Shown here in pieces: positions 431 through 62,793 of a stretch of 64,000 nt of DNA; the stretch's first letter is position 1, and every line of letters starts with the position of its first letter. The stretch comes from Octopus sinensis (lineage: Eukaryota). The notes beneath the pieces were generated by a model. It was not told the origin of the DNA and did no database searches. It worked only from the letters and a program-made list of their open reading frames with translations. The position numbers were made by a program, and so were the translations under genes. The DNA lies in contig NC_043013.1 of the NCBI RefSeq assembly GCF_006345805.1, forward strand, positions 45,756,001 to 45,820,000, given 5' to 3'.

Positions 431-482
431 TTGCCTGAGTAGCAACAACAACAGACGACAAAATAATCAGCAGGAGCTTCAT
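431..482 (-). CDS. Signal-peptide exon 1 ([17 protein letters not shown] + phase 1) of a third TY-domain gene (gene 0) continuing left of the window
   Basis: ATG at 482-480, 17 hydrophobic codons + 1 nt, donor gtaagt. Near-identical to exon 1 of gene C (62742-62793). Confidence 0.85.
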
Positions 483-578
483 GGCGAAATGTCTAGAAAA
501 GAGAAAGAGCGTTGTACAAATAATTTATGAGGACATCTGTGTAAATTAGAGCGAAAAATTGGGAGAAAATGGATGAAA

Positions 579-60000: not shown

Positions 60001-62793
60001 ATCTATCTATCTATCTATCTATCTATCTATCTATCTATCTATCTATCTATCTATCTATCTATCTATCTATCTATTTGTCTATCTATCTATCTATCTATCT
60101 ATCTATCTATCTATCTATCTATATCTATCTATCTATCTATCTATCTATCTACACACATACACACACGTTGTTATAATATATTACAAGTATTGAACAAGTA
60201 TTTCGCTTACATTGGGCCTTTACACTGCAGCCGGGAGTACGATCCATCCTCTTCACATGCTGGAAAATCCCTTGAAAACGTCACGAGTCTGTACTGAGCA
60301 CAGGTAACTGAAATATCAAAACAGAGTAAAACATAAGATATACTTAATAACAGGTGTTAGAAGGTATAATGGACAGATGAAATACCTGCACTCCATTCAT
60401 TACCACCAAAGGGTAGCTGTGTATTGATATCGAACCCGTGTGTGCCTTGTTGCTTTTACTGCTTTATTCTCGGACTGTGTTAATGTTGTTACTGTGTGGC
60501 TGTGGACGGTTTTACATTTTGGCACAAGGCCAGCAGTTTTGGGGGAGGTGATAAGTCGATTTCATCGACCCCAGTGCGTAACTGGTACTTATTTTATCAA
60601 CCCTAAAAGGGTGAAAGGCAAAGACAACCTCGGTGGAACTTGAACTCAGAACCTACAGACGGACGAAATGCCGCTCAGTGTTTTGCCCATCGTGCTAACG
60701 ATTCTTATTTCTTTATTGCCCACAAGGGGCTAAACATAGAGGGGACAAACAAGGACACACAAAGGGATTAAGTCGATTACATCGACCCCAGTGCGTAACT
60801 GGTACTTATTTAATCGACCCCGAAAGGATGAAAGGCAAAGTTGATCTCGGCGGAATTTGAACTCAGAACGTAATGGCTGACGAAACACCTATTTCTTTAT
60901 TACCCACAAGGGGCTAAACATAGAGGGGACAAACAAGGACAGACATAGGTATTAAGTCGATTACATCGACCCCAGTGCGTAACTGGTACTTAATTTATCG
61001 ACTCCGAAAGGATGAAAGGCAAAGTCGACCTCGGTGGAATTTGAACTCAGAACGTAACGGCAGACGCAACACCGTTAAGCATTTCGCCCGGCGTGCTAAC
61101 GTTTCTGCCAGCTCGCCGCCTTGATAAATACACACACACACACACACACACACACACACACACACACACACACACACACACAAAACGAATGGATCACGAT
61201 GATAAATTGAAGGTGAGACTTCCCACACCACCACCACAAAAATAACAATTATATATATAAACGTATATATGTCCGTGCATGTATGTGTGTGTGTATGTGC
61301 GTAAGCATGTGTCAAGTTCCTCTGGTTTGCAGCTGTTCTTATCAACTCCCTCCTCAATGTTTCTATCTGCTGCTTTTTTTCCACTCCCTCCTTTACTATG
61401 ACTGTTACTCCTGGATATTGTCAACACCTCCCGTTCTATTTTTCCGACTCATAACATTTCCCTCTCCTTCCTCCTATCTGGACATTCATCTAATAACATC
61501 ACAGAACATCACAACCTTTTCTCTAACGAAAAATCCTGCCGGAAACGTAAACGTTGTCGTCTTTCTCAAGGCATAATAATTTATTCCACCGTTTGAACTT
61601 TATATATCCGTGTATATATCACTTGTACTATGATGATATTTCACGACTTTCTCTCTCTTGTGGTGGACATCAAATACAAGAAGATACCATGCACAAAAAG
61701 AGTGAGTTGGCGTGGTCGTACGACTTACTAGAAATATCAATTAATTATTACCTGCTACATTATAAAACAGGGGTTCTCAACTATGTCGTATGGACTCCTT
61801 TGATGACTATTTCATTCTGGTGAATTCCCATATCCATTCCATGTTTAAAAACTAGTTTTATAGAAACTTCTTTCAAAATTCCTATTCTGTTTTTCATATA
61901 TTAACTTTTATAGGTCGAAGTATGCAAAATGTTAAAGAAAGAAACCTAGCTGTTTTTTGCAATACATACCAATAATACATCTAAAACAAATGTTTATTCA
62001 GAGGCCCTTAAAATACCATTTTAGATCACCGGTTTATTATTTTGTTGCGTGGACCCCACAAATGGCTCAGGAGCCATATAGACAGTTTGAGAACCACTGA
62101 TTTTAATGGAATTATATAAAGGATAAAGTAATTCTAGATGCCCTGTGTTCAAGGGAAAAAGGTGATGGTGGATGCAATACCGTAGATCATATATCTACTC
62201 GGTCAGTGCCAAATTAGGGATAAAGAACAACAGCAATATAACCTTTGATTATCAAAGACAACCATAGGTAAACATCCTTTATGATAACAAGCAATCCAGG
62301 GCCCAGAAACTTGATGTTGGCTTTATTACTATAAGTGAAATAACTCCGTCTCTTAATTAAAAAAAAAACCCACGTATATTTATGGAGCCACGACACACGC
62401 ATGAAGGTATCTATGATGCACGGCGTCAATATATCTTCCTTTTAAGATAATTATATTTAAATAATGCTATATATTTGCTTTAATCATGTGCTAGTGGACG
62501 GGCGGACATTGGGAAGGCCATCGAGCTGTAAAGCCTCCAGTATAATAGCAACAACATACGCTCGACTTCACATAATGTTGCTTGCCATAACACAAACACC
62601 TCTTGCTGTTGCTATGGTGATGGGTGAGGCTGTCGAAGATGTATCTAACTTGTTATGCAAGCATTGACAGCTACAGACATTAAATGAACTAATGATTAGT
62701 CATGAGGATATACAGGTAAATGCTTTCAAAGCAGTACTTACTTGCCTGAGTAGCAACAACAACAGACGACAAAATTATCAGCAGGAGCTTCAT
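53975..62793 (-). CDS. Gene C: secreted 2-TY-domain protein, join(62793-62742,60307-60211,56370-56291,55624-55439[,54030-53975])
   Basis: [138 protein letters not shown]... All junctions GT-AG and in phase; 12 Cys. Confidence 0.85.
55439..55624 (-). CDS. Exon C4: TY domain 2
   Basis: 186 bp, acceptor cttcaag, donor G|gtaagt; ORF 55431-55655. Confidence 0.9.
55741..56152. mobile_element. Merlin-like MITE, 8-bp TSD ACATTTAG
   Basis: Complete TIRs and exact TSD; the empty paralogous site is at about 25900-25935. Confidence 0.85.
56291..56370 (-). CDS. Exon C3: [26 protein letters not shown]
   Basis: 80 bp, acceptor ttcttacag, donor gtaagt. Confidence 0.9.
56531..56779 (-). mobile_element. 5'-truncated RTE-like LINE 3' end
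   Basis: ORF 56540-56779 is nearly identical to 43359-43706; TSD about CAGACCTT. Confidence 0.85.
58246..59032 (+). mobile_element. Four-unit SINE family 3 tandem array (184-bp period) nested in a family 2 SINE
   Basis: Junctions at 58481, 58665, 58849. Confidence 0.85.
59250..59690 (+). mobile_element. Decayed mariner transposase fragment
   Basis: VIHDNARPH...[14 protein letters not shown]...HLFRSL, matching the HDNARPH and YSPDLAP motifs, with stops. Confidence 0.75.
60211..60307 (-). CDS. Exon C2: [31 protein letters not shown]
   Basis: 97 bp, acceptor gatatttcag, donor gtaagc, phase 1->2. Confidence 0.9.
60530..61121 (-). mobile_element. Three-unit SINE family 3 tandem array
   Basis: About 185-bp period. 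Confidence 0.8.
61768..62099. mobile_element. hAT (Charlie-like) MITE
   Basis: TIRs CAGGGGTTCTCAAC / GTTTGAGAACCACTG; TSD not exact. Confidence 0.6.
62742..62793 (-). CDS. Signal-peptide exon 1 of gene C ([17 protein letters not shown])
   Basis: ATG at 62793-62791, donor gtaagt, phase 1. Confidence 0.9.

Follow-up and report, generated by a model that had tools for sequence, protein, structure and literature searches.

The cluster and its one complete gene

The window analyzed here, a 64,000-nucleotide stretch of DNA, matches exactly the Octopus sinensis record at positions 45,756,001–45,820,000 of chromosome CM016875.1, so that the octopus-like genome surmised in the initial annotation is indeed that of an octopus. 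On the minus strand it probably includes the 5' end of a cluster in which genes for short two-domain thyropins are lined up head to tail. Three homologous units of the same orientation, here designated C, BA and Z, follow one another head to tail; their signal exons, terminal exons and intergenic blocks are collinear, and they thus constitute a tandem array. Gene C alone is both complete and intact inside the window. The three minus-strand signal-type exons first reported are real (62793–62742, 38795–38738 and 482–431), the outer limits then given, 62793 and 431, being the first base of one of them and the last base of another. A homology search of the window places signal-exon homologues only at 62.8k, 38.8k and 0.5k, and a window-wide scan for an ATG followed by a hydrophobic stretch and a phase-1 donor returned just two matches, the gene C signal exon among them.

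Three sets of minus-strand exons encoding thyroglobulin type-1 (TY) domains, C, B and A, share one architecture, with exons TY1a (97/94/94 nt in C/B/A), TY1b (80/80/80 nt) and TY2 (186/186/185 nt, that of A including the stop). All of their splice sites are canonical AG/GT with compatible phases. The identical architecture had been recognized correctly at the outset; the sets had also been called complete, which overlooked a fifth, terminal exon (coding 53709–53696 in gene C). Nor is there one signal exon for each TY set, as had been supposed: a signal exon is missing from set A and a terminal exon from set B, and the TY exons that go with the signal exon at 482–431 are beyond the window. Of the three small two-TY genes originally proposed, gene C is one complete gene, B and A are probably to be read as one composite four-TY unit with a lost ATG, and 482–431 is a lone signal exon.

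Gene C begins with a signal exon at 62742–62793, in which the ATG at 62793 opens 17 codons plus one nucleotide, followed by a phase-1 donor (gtaagt); the encoded residues are identical to the N-terminus of XP_029646880.1. Just upstream sits an acceptor-like tctag, which makes a further-upstream 5'UTR exon probable. The first TY domain is split between TY1a (60211–60307; Cys1–Cys3, phase-1 acceptor and phase-2 donor) and TY1b (56291–56370; Cys4–Cys6, with the CFCF motif and an NKT glycosylation sequon), while TY2 (55439–55624) carries the whole of the second domain, with six cysteines, a CYCV motif and a PF00086 match, and ends in phase 1 at TAT G/gtaagt. The terminal exon (53587–53709) follows an acceptor at 53711–53710, encodes the final E-N-R-S and stop over 53709–53696, and continues as 3'UTR with AATAAA at 53646 and 53587. 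A product ending in CYGK by read-through of the last intron was considered and rejected, since the database protein ends in CYENRS and the corresponding terminal exon is present. The five coding exons thus run from 62793 to 53696, a span of 9098 nt that coincides with the gene range on record, and the product equals XP_029646880.1 (‘U24-ctenitoxin-Pn1a-like’) residue for residue.

The gene C precursor comprises 142 aa, with a 17-residue leader and two six-Cys TY domains joined through a Cys-Asn-Cys junction. The leader is hydrophobic (mean Kyte-Doolittle 1.9) and ends ...ATQA/I; from this hydrophobicity and the A-x-A-like cleavage motif we infer that the product is secreted, in keeping with the small, secreted-type protein envisaged earlier. 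Annotation in O. vulgaris and O. bimaculoides includes orthologues with the same five exons. Between O. sinensis and O. bimaculoides the exons are 94.4% identical, as against 87.5–90% in three of the four introns, and with between-species dN/dS of 0.27–0.38 the gene is under purifying selection (about 0.3). Gene C is therefore an intact, conserved and already annotated gene, and the array can hardly be called hidden, as it had been, when this member is on record as XP_029646880.1 with annotated orthologues in two other octopuses. The further description of the exons as invisible to a 60-aa ORF scan holds only in part, since two of the TY2 exons are listed as ORFs of 96 and 74 aa with TTG starts. 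In O. bimaculoides, isoform X3 uses an alternative, far-upstream first exon spliced straight to TY1a, skipping the signal exon; the first exon in which isoforms X1 and X3 have their ATGs is absent from the window and from the flanking and related sequences searched.

At the other end of the window, unit Z starts at 482, and its remaining exons, TY exons included, lie beyond the left edge. Its signal exon (431–482) encodes the same peptide as that of gene C, and the 740 bp around it are 94.6% identical to the gene C counterpart. The expectation of a tandem array of paralogues running past both edges is thus borne out to the left; to the right, no TY or signal exon occurs in the adjoining 8.8 kb of O. 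sinensis (10 kb upstream of the gene C ATG), nor upstream of the cluster in O. vulgaris (48 kb) or O. bimaculoides (35 kb).

TY domains and the divergence of the paralogues

Pfam, a sequence search of the PDB and a fold search agree that the domains are of thyroglobulin type 1. Against a PF00086 cut-off of 20.6 bits, the spliced products score 48.3 (C), 49.6 (B) and 59.2 (A), with two domains each, so that the domain assignment made at the outset passes the Pfam check proposed with it, at 48–59 bits; a fused BA product scores 96.2 bits in four stretches. Together with the identity of gene C to a database protein, these scores put the exon sets far beyond chance. All six domains show the type-1A cysteine pattern, namely six Cys, a (V/L/I)QC, and CFCF, CVCV, CFCY or CYCV, with Phe, Val or Tyr in place of the Trp of the canonical CWCV. 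Among PDB sequences, thyroglobulin, saxiphilin, Trop2 and p41 match best, and a Foldseek search with an AlphaFold2 model (pLDDT 87.5, pTM 0.76) puts at the top the saxiphilin TY pair, thyroglobulin, EpCAM/Trop2, p41 (bound to cathepsin L) and the IGFBP C-domain.

A six-frame scan also yields eight CWCV-motif matches on both strands, which proved to be translations of a ~420-bp interspersed repeat and not TY domains; the plus-strand CWCV strings were rejected on this ground. In the SINE-like repeats, ARAGORN detected nothing resembling a tRNA gene.

Among the paralogues C, B and A, all 12 cysteines are invariant at 45–51% amino-acid identity, and the C-N-C junction is found in each; in an alignment of 26 family sequences its columns do not vary. 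Paralogue dN/dS is 0.57–0.86, with divergence equal at all three codon positions. A cysteine scaffold kept in place while most other residues diverged suggests that the paralogues may differ in target specificity. The signal exons and their flanks are 87–99% identical among units, as opposed to 61–69% for the mature exons, a mosaic pattern that fits gene conversion.

The probable composite unit BA

The signal exon of unit BA (38738–38795) is 87% identical to that of gene C over about 800 bp. It begins with GTG and not with ATG. The next in-frame ATG lies seven codons downstream, and a leader read from there would have only about 12 residues, of low hydrophobicity; in the other direction no stop interrupts the frame as far as the upstream acceptor. 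The O. bimaculoides counterpart of this exon does have an ATG. Downstream follow the three exons of cassette B, TY1a (30487–30580, 94 nt), TY1b (27798–27877, with CVCV) and TY2 (25614–25799, ending in phase 1 at TCT G/gtaaga), and then those of cassette A, TY1a (16994–17087), TY1b (13895–13974, with CFCY) and TY2 (11124–11308), in which a TAA stop (11126–11124) comes right after the last Cys and just before the conserved donor. A homologue of the gene C terminal exon, at 72% identity, lies with its 3' flank at 5729–5945 and acts as 3'UTR, with AATAAA at 5860.

Between 17088 and 25600, neither blastn-short nor tblastn revealed a signal exon for A, nor did a search for an ATG followed by a hydrophobic stretch and a phase-1 donor, and no terminal-exon homologue was found after B, such a homologue being present only downstream of A. 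The sequence upstream of A is instead collinear with intron 1 of B and that downstream of B with intron 4 of A, and the intergenic stretch between the A terminal exon and the Z signal exon runs collinear with the one between the C terminal exon and the B signal exon. At the B/A junction (23089–24283), sequence resembling intron 4 of B passes into sequence resembling intron 1 of A, the collinear blocks pairing 10302–10430 with 24283–24410 and 22516–23089 with 32517–33067. Two interspersed-repeat copies (23225–23647 and 23869–24277) occupy this junction and mark it as a likely site of unequal recombination; the structure would then probably have arisen when interspersed repeats of introns 1 and 4 recombined in this way. 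The cassette borders are all of phase 1, and an in-frame junction of B to A is possible: the phase-1 acceptor of A TY1a is in frame with the donor of B TY2, the codon at the putative splice being G/CT, Ala.

With one signal exon upstream of B, one terminal-exon homologue downstream of A, phase-1 borders throughout and a single repeat unit filled, the simplest reading, and in our judgment a likely one, is that B and A together make up a single composite gene with four TY domains, which seems to be unannotated and may be crippled. Because all of the borders share phase 1, one four-TY protein of some 258 aa would result from constitutive splicing, and two-TY isoforms if one cassette were skipped. 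The TY coding potential of the cluster thus exceeds that of the single annotated gene found, and the surplus includes this cassette-duplicated unit with its lost start codon.

We regard as unlikely that B and A are instead separate genes which, with C, make three of the two-TY type, A having its own unrecognized first exon or promoter and B ending at TY2 by intron read-through. Such an ending is available, in that the unspliced B TY2 frame runs 12 codons to a TAA, with an ATTAAA at 25067, and the bypass of the signal exon by isoform X3 of the O. bimaculoides gene illustrates how A could be started from afar. In O. bimaculoides, moreover, the gene that follows the C orthologue, starting near position 41,727,450 of CM046617.1, has an annotated product of 145 aa, the size of a two-TY protein, and the ancestral, perhaps also the present, state could therefore be one of separate two-TY genes or of cassette-skipping isoforms; a search for this 145-aa protein in the protein collection gave no close match. 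Against three genes stand the 8.5 kb upstream of A, in which homology and motif scans find no signal exon, the missing terminal-exon homologue downstream of B, the way in which the B+A block fills one repeat unit, from one signal exon to one terminal exon together with an intergenic homologue, and the intact, phase-compatible pair of B TY2 donor and A TY1a acceptor.

If BA is one gene, it need not be a working one. With its ancestral ATG now GTG, it may be weakly translated, rely on an upstream in-frame ATG, or be newly dead, and the proteins of B or A have no close match in a 5.8-billion-protein collection, in a word-indexed search that can miss relatives; the two observations together allow that BA is unexpressed or dying. 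To suppose accordingly that B and A are a non-functional remnant, and that the working genes are only C and possibly Z, is a reading to which we give some weight, though less than even. The GTG and the poor leader left by the next ATG speak for it, as do the lack of a near-identical protein in so large a collection, the paralogue dN/dS with its equal divergence across codon positions, and a stop codon in A that comes five codons earlier than that of C. This early stop, however, costs only a non-domain tail. The 720 nt of cassette coding sequence contain neither stop nor frameshift, and 24 of 24 cysteines and 12 of 12 splice sites are intact at about 35–40% nucleotide divergence, from which it follows that the scaffold was under selection for most of its history and that any inactivation would be recent. 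The GTG itself may be a single-base assembly error or a polymorphism, and as the frame upstream is open to the acceptor, an upstream ATG would be usable, as in isoform X1 of O. bimaculoides. At the other extreme, BA might be a functional cassette-duplicated gene in which one promoter and signal exon would serve a four-domain thyropin, or alternative two-domain inhibitors of differing specificities, within a fast-diversifying octopus array used in saliva, mucus or immunity; this fuller proposal we think rather doubtful.

Family placement and likely function

What was observed is genuine, though for the most part ordinary: records already exist for the family, for the way its domains are arranged and for the principal gene, and nothing in the cluster challenges current understanding. 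A phmmer search of 1.84 billion representatives retrieves secreted two-TY proteins of 143–155 aa from a nemertean, a scallop, a clam and an annelid, with the same C6-x-C1 junction as in octopus. The family is not lineage-specific, as had been proposed, for short two-TY proteins with Cys-x-Cys occur in nemerteans, bivalves, annelids and arthropods (PMC10889554); the local duplication alone is octopus-specific, and the two-TY family is wider. Literature searches on these accessions, on cephalopod thyropins and on an O. sinensis ctenitoxin found nothing.

The nearest company of gene C is that of IrThy, the U24-ctenitoxin-Pn1a-like proteins and the equistatin-like group (MEROPS I31), which likewise have a signal peptide, exactly two six-Cys TY domains, fewer than 180 residues and no other domain. 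The Cys-x-Cys junction is common among these short two-domain thyropins, octopus C76-N77-C78 corresponding to C79-K80-C81 of IrThy. Although they are retrieved at phmmer E values of 1e-13 to 1e-16, they are only 30–40% identical to the octopus proteins, which differ in a shorter Cys1–Cys2 segment of TY1, in the change of the CWCV Trp to Phe, Val or Tyr, in altered ‘CARD..EY’ and ‘GSVCYCVD’ motifs, in a short C-terminal tail on a separate micro-exon and, in unit BA, in what are apparently four TY domains.

In IrThy, the Cys79-Lys80-Cys81 junction is associated with an interdomain disulfide swap, and both domains inhibit cathepsins V, K and L at nM concentrations (PMC10889554). By analogy, given the Cys-x-Cys junction of short two-domain thyropins, cathepsin inhibition appears the likeliest function of the octopus proteins, which would be secreted and would block papain-family cysteine cathepsins through tight, reversible binding, each TY domain pushing a three-loop wedge into the protease's active-site cleft. 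This wedge mechanism has been demonstrated for the p41 fragment, saxiphilin, equistatin and tick IrThy. Many other TY domains (those of IGFBPs, nidogen and EpCAM) are not known as inhibitors, and inhibitory activity is not predictable from sequence. Thyropins are, to our knowledge, a small and poorly explored inhibitor class with a handful of characterized members, only one of which, tick IrThy, is of the short two-domain kind. The divergent octopus paralogues, set on a fixed Cys scaffold, would offer natural variants for specificity studies, and they would also be candidates for shielding saliva, mucus or eggs from cysteine proteases.

The name that NCBI gives gene C, ‘U24-ctenitoxin-Pn1a-like’, raises the alternative that these proteins are toxins or ligand binders, for example salivary ion-channel modulators, as has been suggested for the spider U24-ctenitoxin-Pn1a group. 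A Latrodectus venom fraction with such a protein did change insect sodium-channel currents, but the fraction held 14–30 proteins and its authors leave the mode of action unsettled (PMC8746590). A TY protein is likewise present in the posterior salivary gland proteome of O. vulgaris, but at 227 aa and with a snail saxiphilin-like protein as its best match it is not evidently gene C (PMC7693380), and a search of that paper's supplements turned up no peptide of C, B or A. Fast divergence of paralogues outside the Cys scaffold, beside signal exons at 87–99% identity, is frequent in venom families; gene C itself, however, is under purifying selection between species, and the sole biochemically characterized short two-domain member is a cathepsin inhibitor. 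We therefore hold a toxin role to be quite improbable. Like the arrays of venom peptide families, the octopus cluster combines conserved signal exons, divergent mature exons and an invariant cysteine framework; it departs from them in its mosaic identity and in showing no sign of positive selection (dN/dS below 1).

More distant comparisons are chiefly structural. Equistatin of Actinia equina and the TY pair of saxiphilin both present tandem TY domains, each able to bind a protease, and neither is close in sequence to the octopus proteins. Structurally the octopus model matches the saxiphilin pair best, although that pair is inserted in a transferrin scaffold, while the multi-domain layout of equistatin resembles that of the putative four-TY BA product but has three domains and a split specificity (papain-like enzymes vs cathepsin D). 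The p41 invariant-chain fragment, the mechanistic template for the three-loop wedge, differs in being a single domain in a membrane protein of vertebrate antigen presentation, and its sequence match is weak (E 0.03); the TY type-1A fold is nonetheless held in common, the model superposing locally on 1ICF chain I at 1.0 Å over 36 residues.

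Thyroglobulin type-1 exons and gene C

Exons encoding thyroglobulin type-1 (TY) domains were sought across the whole window by a six-frame motif scan and by tblastn with the first exons recovered. All lie on the minus strand and fall into three sets, A, B and C from left to right: three full-domain exons (TY2; 55.6k, 25.8k and 11.3k), three first halves of split domains (TY1a; 60.3k, 30.6k and 17.1k) and three second halves (TY1b; 56.4k, 27.9k and 14.0k). Three short minus-strand exons (62793-62742, 38795-38738 and 482-431) carry a hydrophobic leader, as would be expected of the secretion proposed in the initial annotation, whose end coordinates, 431 and 62793, are exact exon ends. 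Splice junctions of the C, B and A exons are canonical AG/GT throughout, with mutually consistent phases (signal donor 1; TY1a 1 to 2; TY1b 2 to 1; TY2 1 to 1). The spliced products score 48.3, 49.6 and 59.2 bits against Pfam PF00086 (cut-off 20.6 bits), with two domains in each, so the TY assignment, said to fall if no TY HMM matched, stands. Their closest PDB relatives by sequence are thyroglobulin, saxiphilin, Trop2 and a p41 invariant-chain fragment.

A protein search with the product of gene C, the rightmost set, led to one protein cluster comprising O. bimaculoides "thyroglobulin isoform X1-X3", an O. vulgaris "thyroglobulin type-1 domain-containing protein" and O. sinensis XP_029646880.1, "U24-ctenitoxin-Pn1a-like". 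The last is identical to a four-exon model of gene C save at the C-terminus (...CYENRS versus ...CYGK*), a mismatch that reveals a fifth, terminal exon on the minus strand (acceptor 53711-53710, coding 53709-53696). This exon had been overlooked in an otherwise real and mostly accurate exon reading; together with the database protein, it rules out the ...CYGK* ending. The XP_029646880.1 locus is the window base for base (GCA_006345805.1 CM016875.1:45,756,001-45,820,000), which bears out the octopus origin surmised earlier, and the gene spans 9,098 nt on record, exactly as 62793-53696 does. Although the array had been called hidden, gene C is thus not hidden from annotation.

All five gene C exons are present in the orthologous regions of both O. 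vulgaris (L002) and O. bimaculoides (L003). By NG86, dN is 0.009 and dS 0.033 against O. vulgaris (dN/dS 0.27), and 0.040 and 0.127 against O. bimaculoides (dN/dS 0.32); identity to the latter is 94.4% in exons and 87.5-90% in introns 1, 2 and 4. Judged from these comparisons, gene C is a working gene under ordinary purifying selection. A (TATC)n array of about 100 copies (59757-60151) starts about 60 bp downstream of its TY1a exon, and a recent local tandem duplication (218-bp unit, 95% identity, 63203-63622) lies about 400 bp upstream of its signal exon.

Cassettes B and A

Within the window, the signal exon and its flanks have nucleotide homologues at 62.8k, 38.8k and 0.5k only. A whole-window scan for an ATG, a hydrophobic stretch and a phase-1 donor recovered two intact signal exons, and gave no candidate in the 8.5 kb upstream of set A. 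The gene C terminal exon and its 3' flank have a homologue at a single place, 5729-6028, downstream of A; none was found downstream of B. Low-copy collinear blocks relate 17.1-23.1k, upstream of A, to B intron 1 (30.7-33.1k); 25.6-24.3k, downstream of B, to A intron 4 (11.1-10.3k); and the stretch from the A terminal exon to the signal exon at 482 to that from the C terminal exon to the B signal exon. Taken with the distribution of signal and terminal exons, these blocks define the array's repeat unit as signal exon through terminal exon plus spacer. On this sequence evidence, B and A jointly occupy one such unit, BA, and are one unit, not two genes. The tandem duplication originally proposed is therefore upheld, while its count of three genes is not.

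Two copies of an interspersed repeat fill the B/A junction (23.1-24.3k), which fits an origin of BA either by unequal recombination between repeats of introns 1 and 4 or by a deletion fusing two adjacent genes. Because the B TY2 donor and the A TY1a acceptor are both phase 1, the two cassettes would join in frame (codon G|CT, Ala), giving a predicted four-TY protein of 258 residues that scores 96 bits against PF00086 over four stretches. Each cassette being symmetric, skipping of either would keep the frame. The long intron between the cassettes holds a 1.4-kb (CCAG)n microsatellite (about 353 copies, 19346-20757), which yields several spurious ORFs >110 aa.

The start of BA raises doubts. Its signal exon begins with GTG, whereas C, the next unit leftward (Z) and the O. 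bimaculoides counterpart begin with ATG; from the next ATG, the leader would be too short and too weakly hydrophobic. Upstream of the GTG the frame is open as far as an upstream acceptor, and O. bimaculoides isoform X1 takes its ATG from a far-upstream exon and reads in frame across the homologous sequence; that first exon was sought in the window and not found. A protein search with the BA product gave no close match, and BA would appear to be unannotated. This absence is weak evidence, because the same search missed a 145-aa annotated product of O. bimaculoides, encoded by the gene directly downstream of its C orthologue (L003 46627-53045); no search recovered that protein. The signal exon of this second gene (L003 49775-49825) encodes a peptide identical to the first gene's, and the product's size suggests a two-TY protein. 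The fused or four-TY state of BA may be derived, or may be bypassed via cassette skipping. Against long-standing pseudogenisation, BA retains a 720 nt cassette ORF, 12/12 splice sites and 24/24 cysteines at 45-51% amino-acid identity between cassettes. Any novelty here is modest: beside a known gene lies a four-TY unit with a duplicated cassette and a lost start codon, which apparently has no annotation.

Relatives and putative function

A phmmer search with gene C against 1.84 billion representatives gave 358 hits at E < 1e-3. Gene C's cluster apart, multi-TY proteins rank highest; lower in the list follow secreted proteins of 143-155 aa that share C's two-TY layout, their sources being a nemertean ("equistatin-like"), a scallop ("thyroglobulin-like"), an annelid and a clam, the last with two neighbouring genes. 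The family is thus not lineage-specific, contrary to what had been claimed.

A Cys-x-Cys between the domains is invariant in a 26-sequence alignment. This junction is the hallmark of "short two-domain thyropins", a group described with the tick salivary protein IrThy. There, both junction cysteines are engaged in interdomain disulfides, cathepsins V, K and L are inhibited by each of the two domains at nM Ki, and a three-loop wedge serves as the reactive centre, as it does in p41 bound to cathepsin L (PMC10889554). AlphaFold2 models C (pLDDT 87.5) as two helix-plus-three-strand TY modules, a fold matched best by the saxiphilin TY pair, thyroglobulin, EpCAM/Trop2 and p41. With the junction shared with IrThy, these matches make secreted cysteine-cathepsin inhibition the best-supported putative function.

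The toxin-like name of the gene C product derives from a spider venom protein, "U24-ctenitoxin", whose reported sodium-channel activity came from a mixed chromatographic fraction (PMC8746590). Proteomics of the O. vulgaris posterior salivary gland has detected a TY protein (PMC7693380); at 227 aa, and with a snail saxiphilin-like protein as its best match, this product does not evidently belong to a gene of the window. In the literature we found no mention of these accessions, nor of thyropins in cephalopods.

Extent, divergence and repeats

The array had been expected to run past both window edges. On the left it does, with the Z signal exon at 482-431; on the right, no TY or signal exon was found within 8.8 kb in O. 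sinensis, nor upstream of C in 48 kb of O. vulgaris or 35 kb of O. bimaculoides. Given this empty sequence in three species, C is the first gene and the array extends leftward only. A small O. bimaculoides first exon (L003 10001-10028), lying 25 kb further upstream than the signal exon, contains two ATGs that overlap in different frames. One frame is spliced to the signal exon (isoform X1, MYRHFT-MKLL...); the other bypasses that exon for TY1a (isoform X3, MVVWTVACIV-TCAQ...), so that its product would lack the normal leader.

A, B and C are about equidistant (pairwise amino-acid identity 45-51%; dN 0.39-0.51, dS 0.46-0.74, dN/dS 0.57-0.86), with identity alike over the three codon positions. 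Signal exons and flanks are 87-99% identical between units, and A and B agree at 90-92% in some distal intron-1 blocks, against 61% in the cassette exons. Such a mosaic speaks for gene conversion or recurrent unequal exchange and not for a simple duplication date, and positive selection is not demonstrated by it. The cysteine scaffold has clearly been kept while the loops diverged.

A ~420-bp interspersed repeat is present in at least 10 copies, in both orientations, at 89-94% identity, mostly in TY-gene introns and spacers (3046-3466, 11512-11901, 26124-26540, 40242-40665, 45948-46354 and 55740-56152, among others). A second family (2298-2720, 4528-4912, 23225-23647, 23869-24277 and 54492-54916), with two copies at the B/A junction, has one frame whose reading (11 residues, not shown) gives false CWCV (TY-like) motif matches. 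A SINE-like element, its unit 184 bp long, recurs two to four times in tandem at 90-93% identity (18315-18667, 52694-53132, 58296-59032 and 60706-61073); ARAGORN found no tRNA in the window. Other local features are a (TCTA)n array of about 60 copies (36280-36519) and a recent tandem duplication with a 607-bp unit (98% identity, 8087-9353). The spacer between gene C and BA holds a LINE-type reverse transcriptase ORF fragment on the plus strand (42838-43706; RVT_1 25 bits, below the Pfam cut-off of 29.6) and a long AGC/CTT-rich low-complexity tract (51571-52300) that translates as poly-Ser or poly-Leu.
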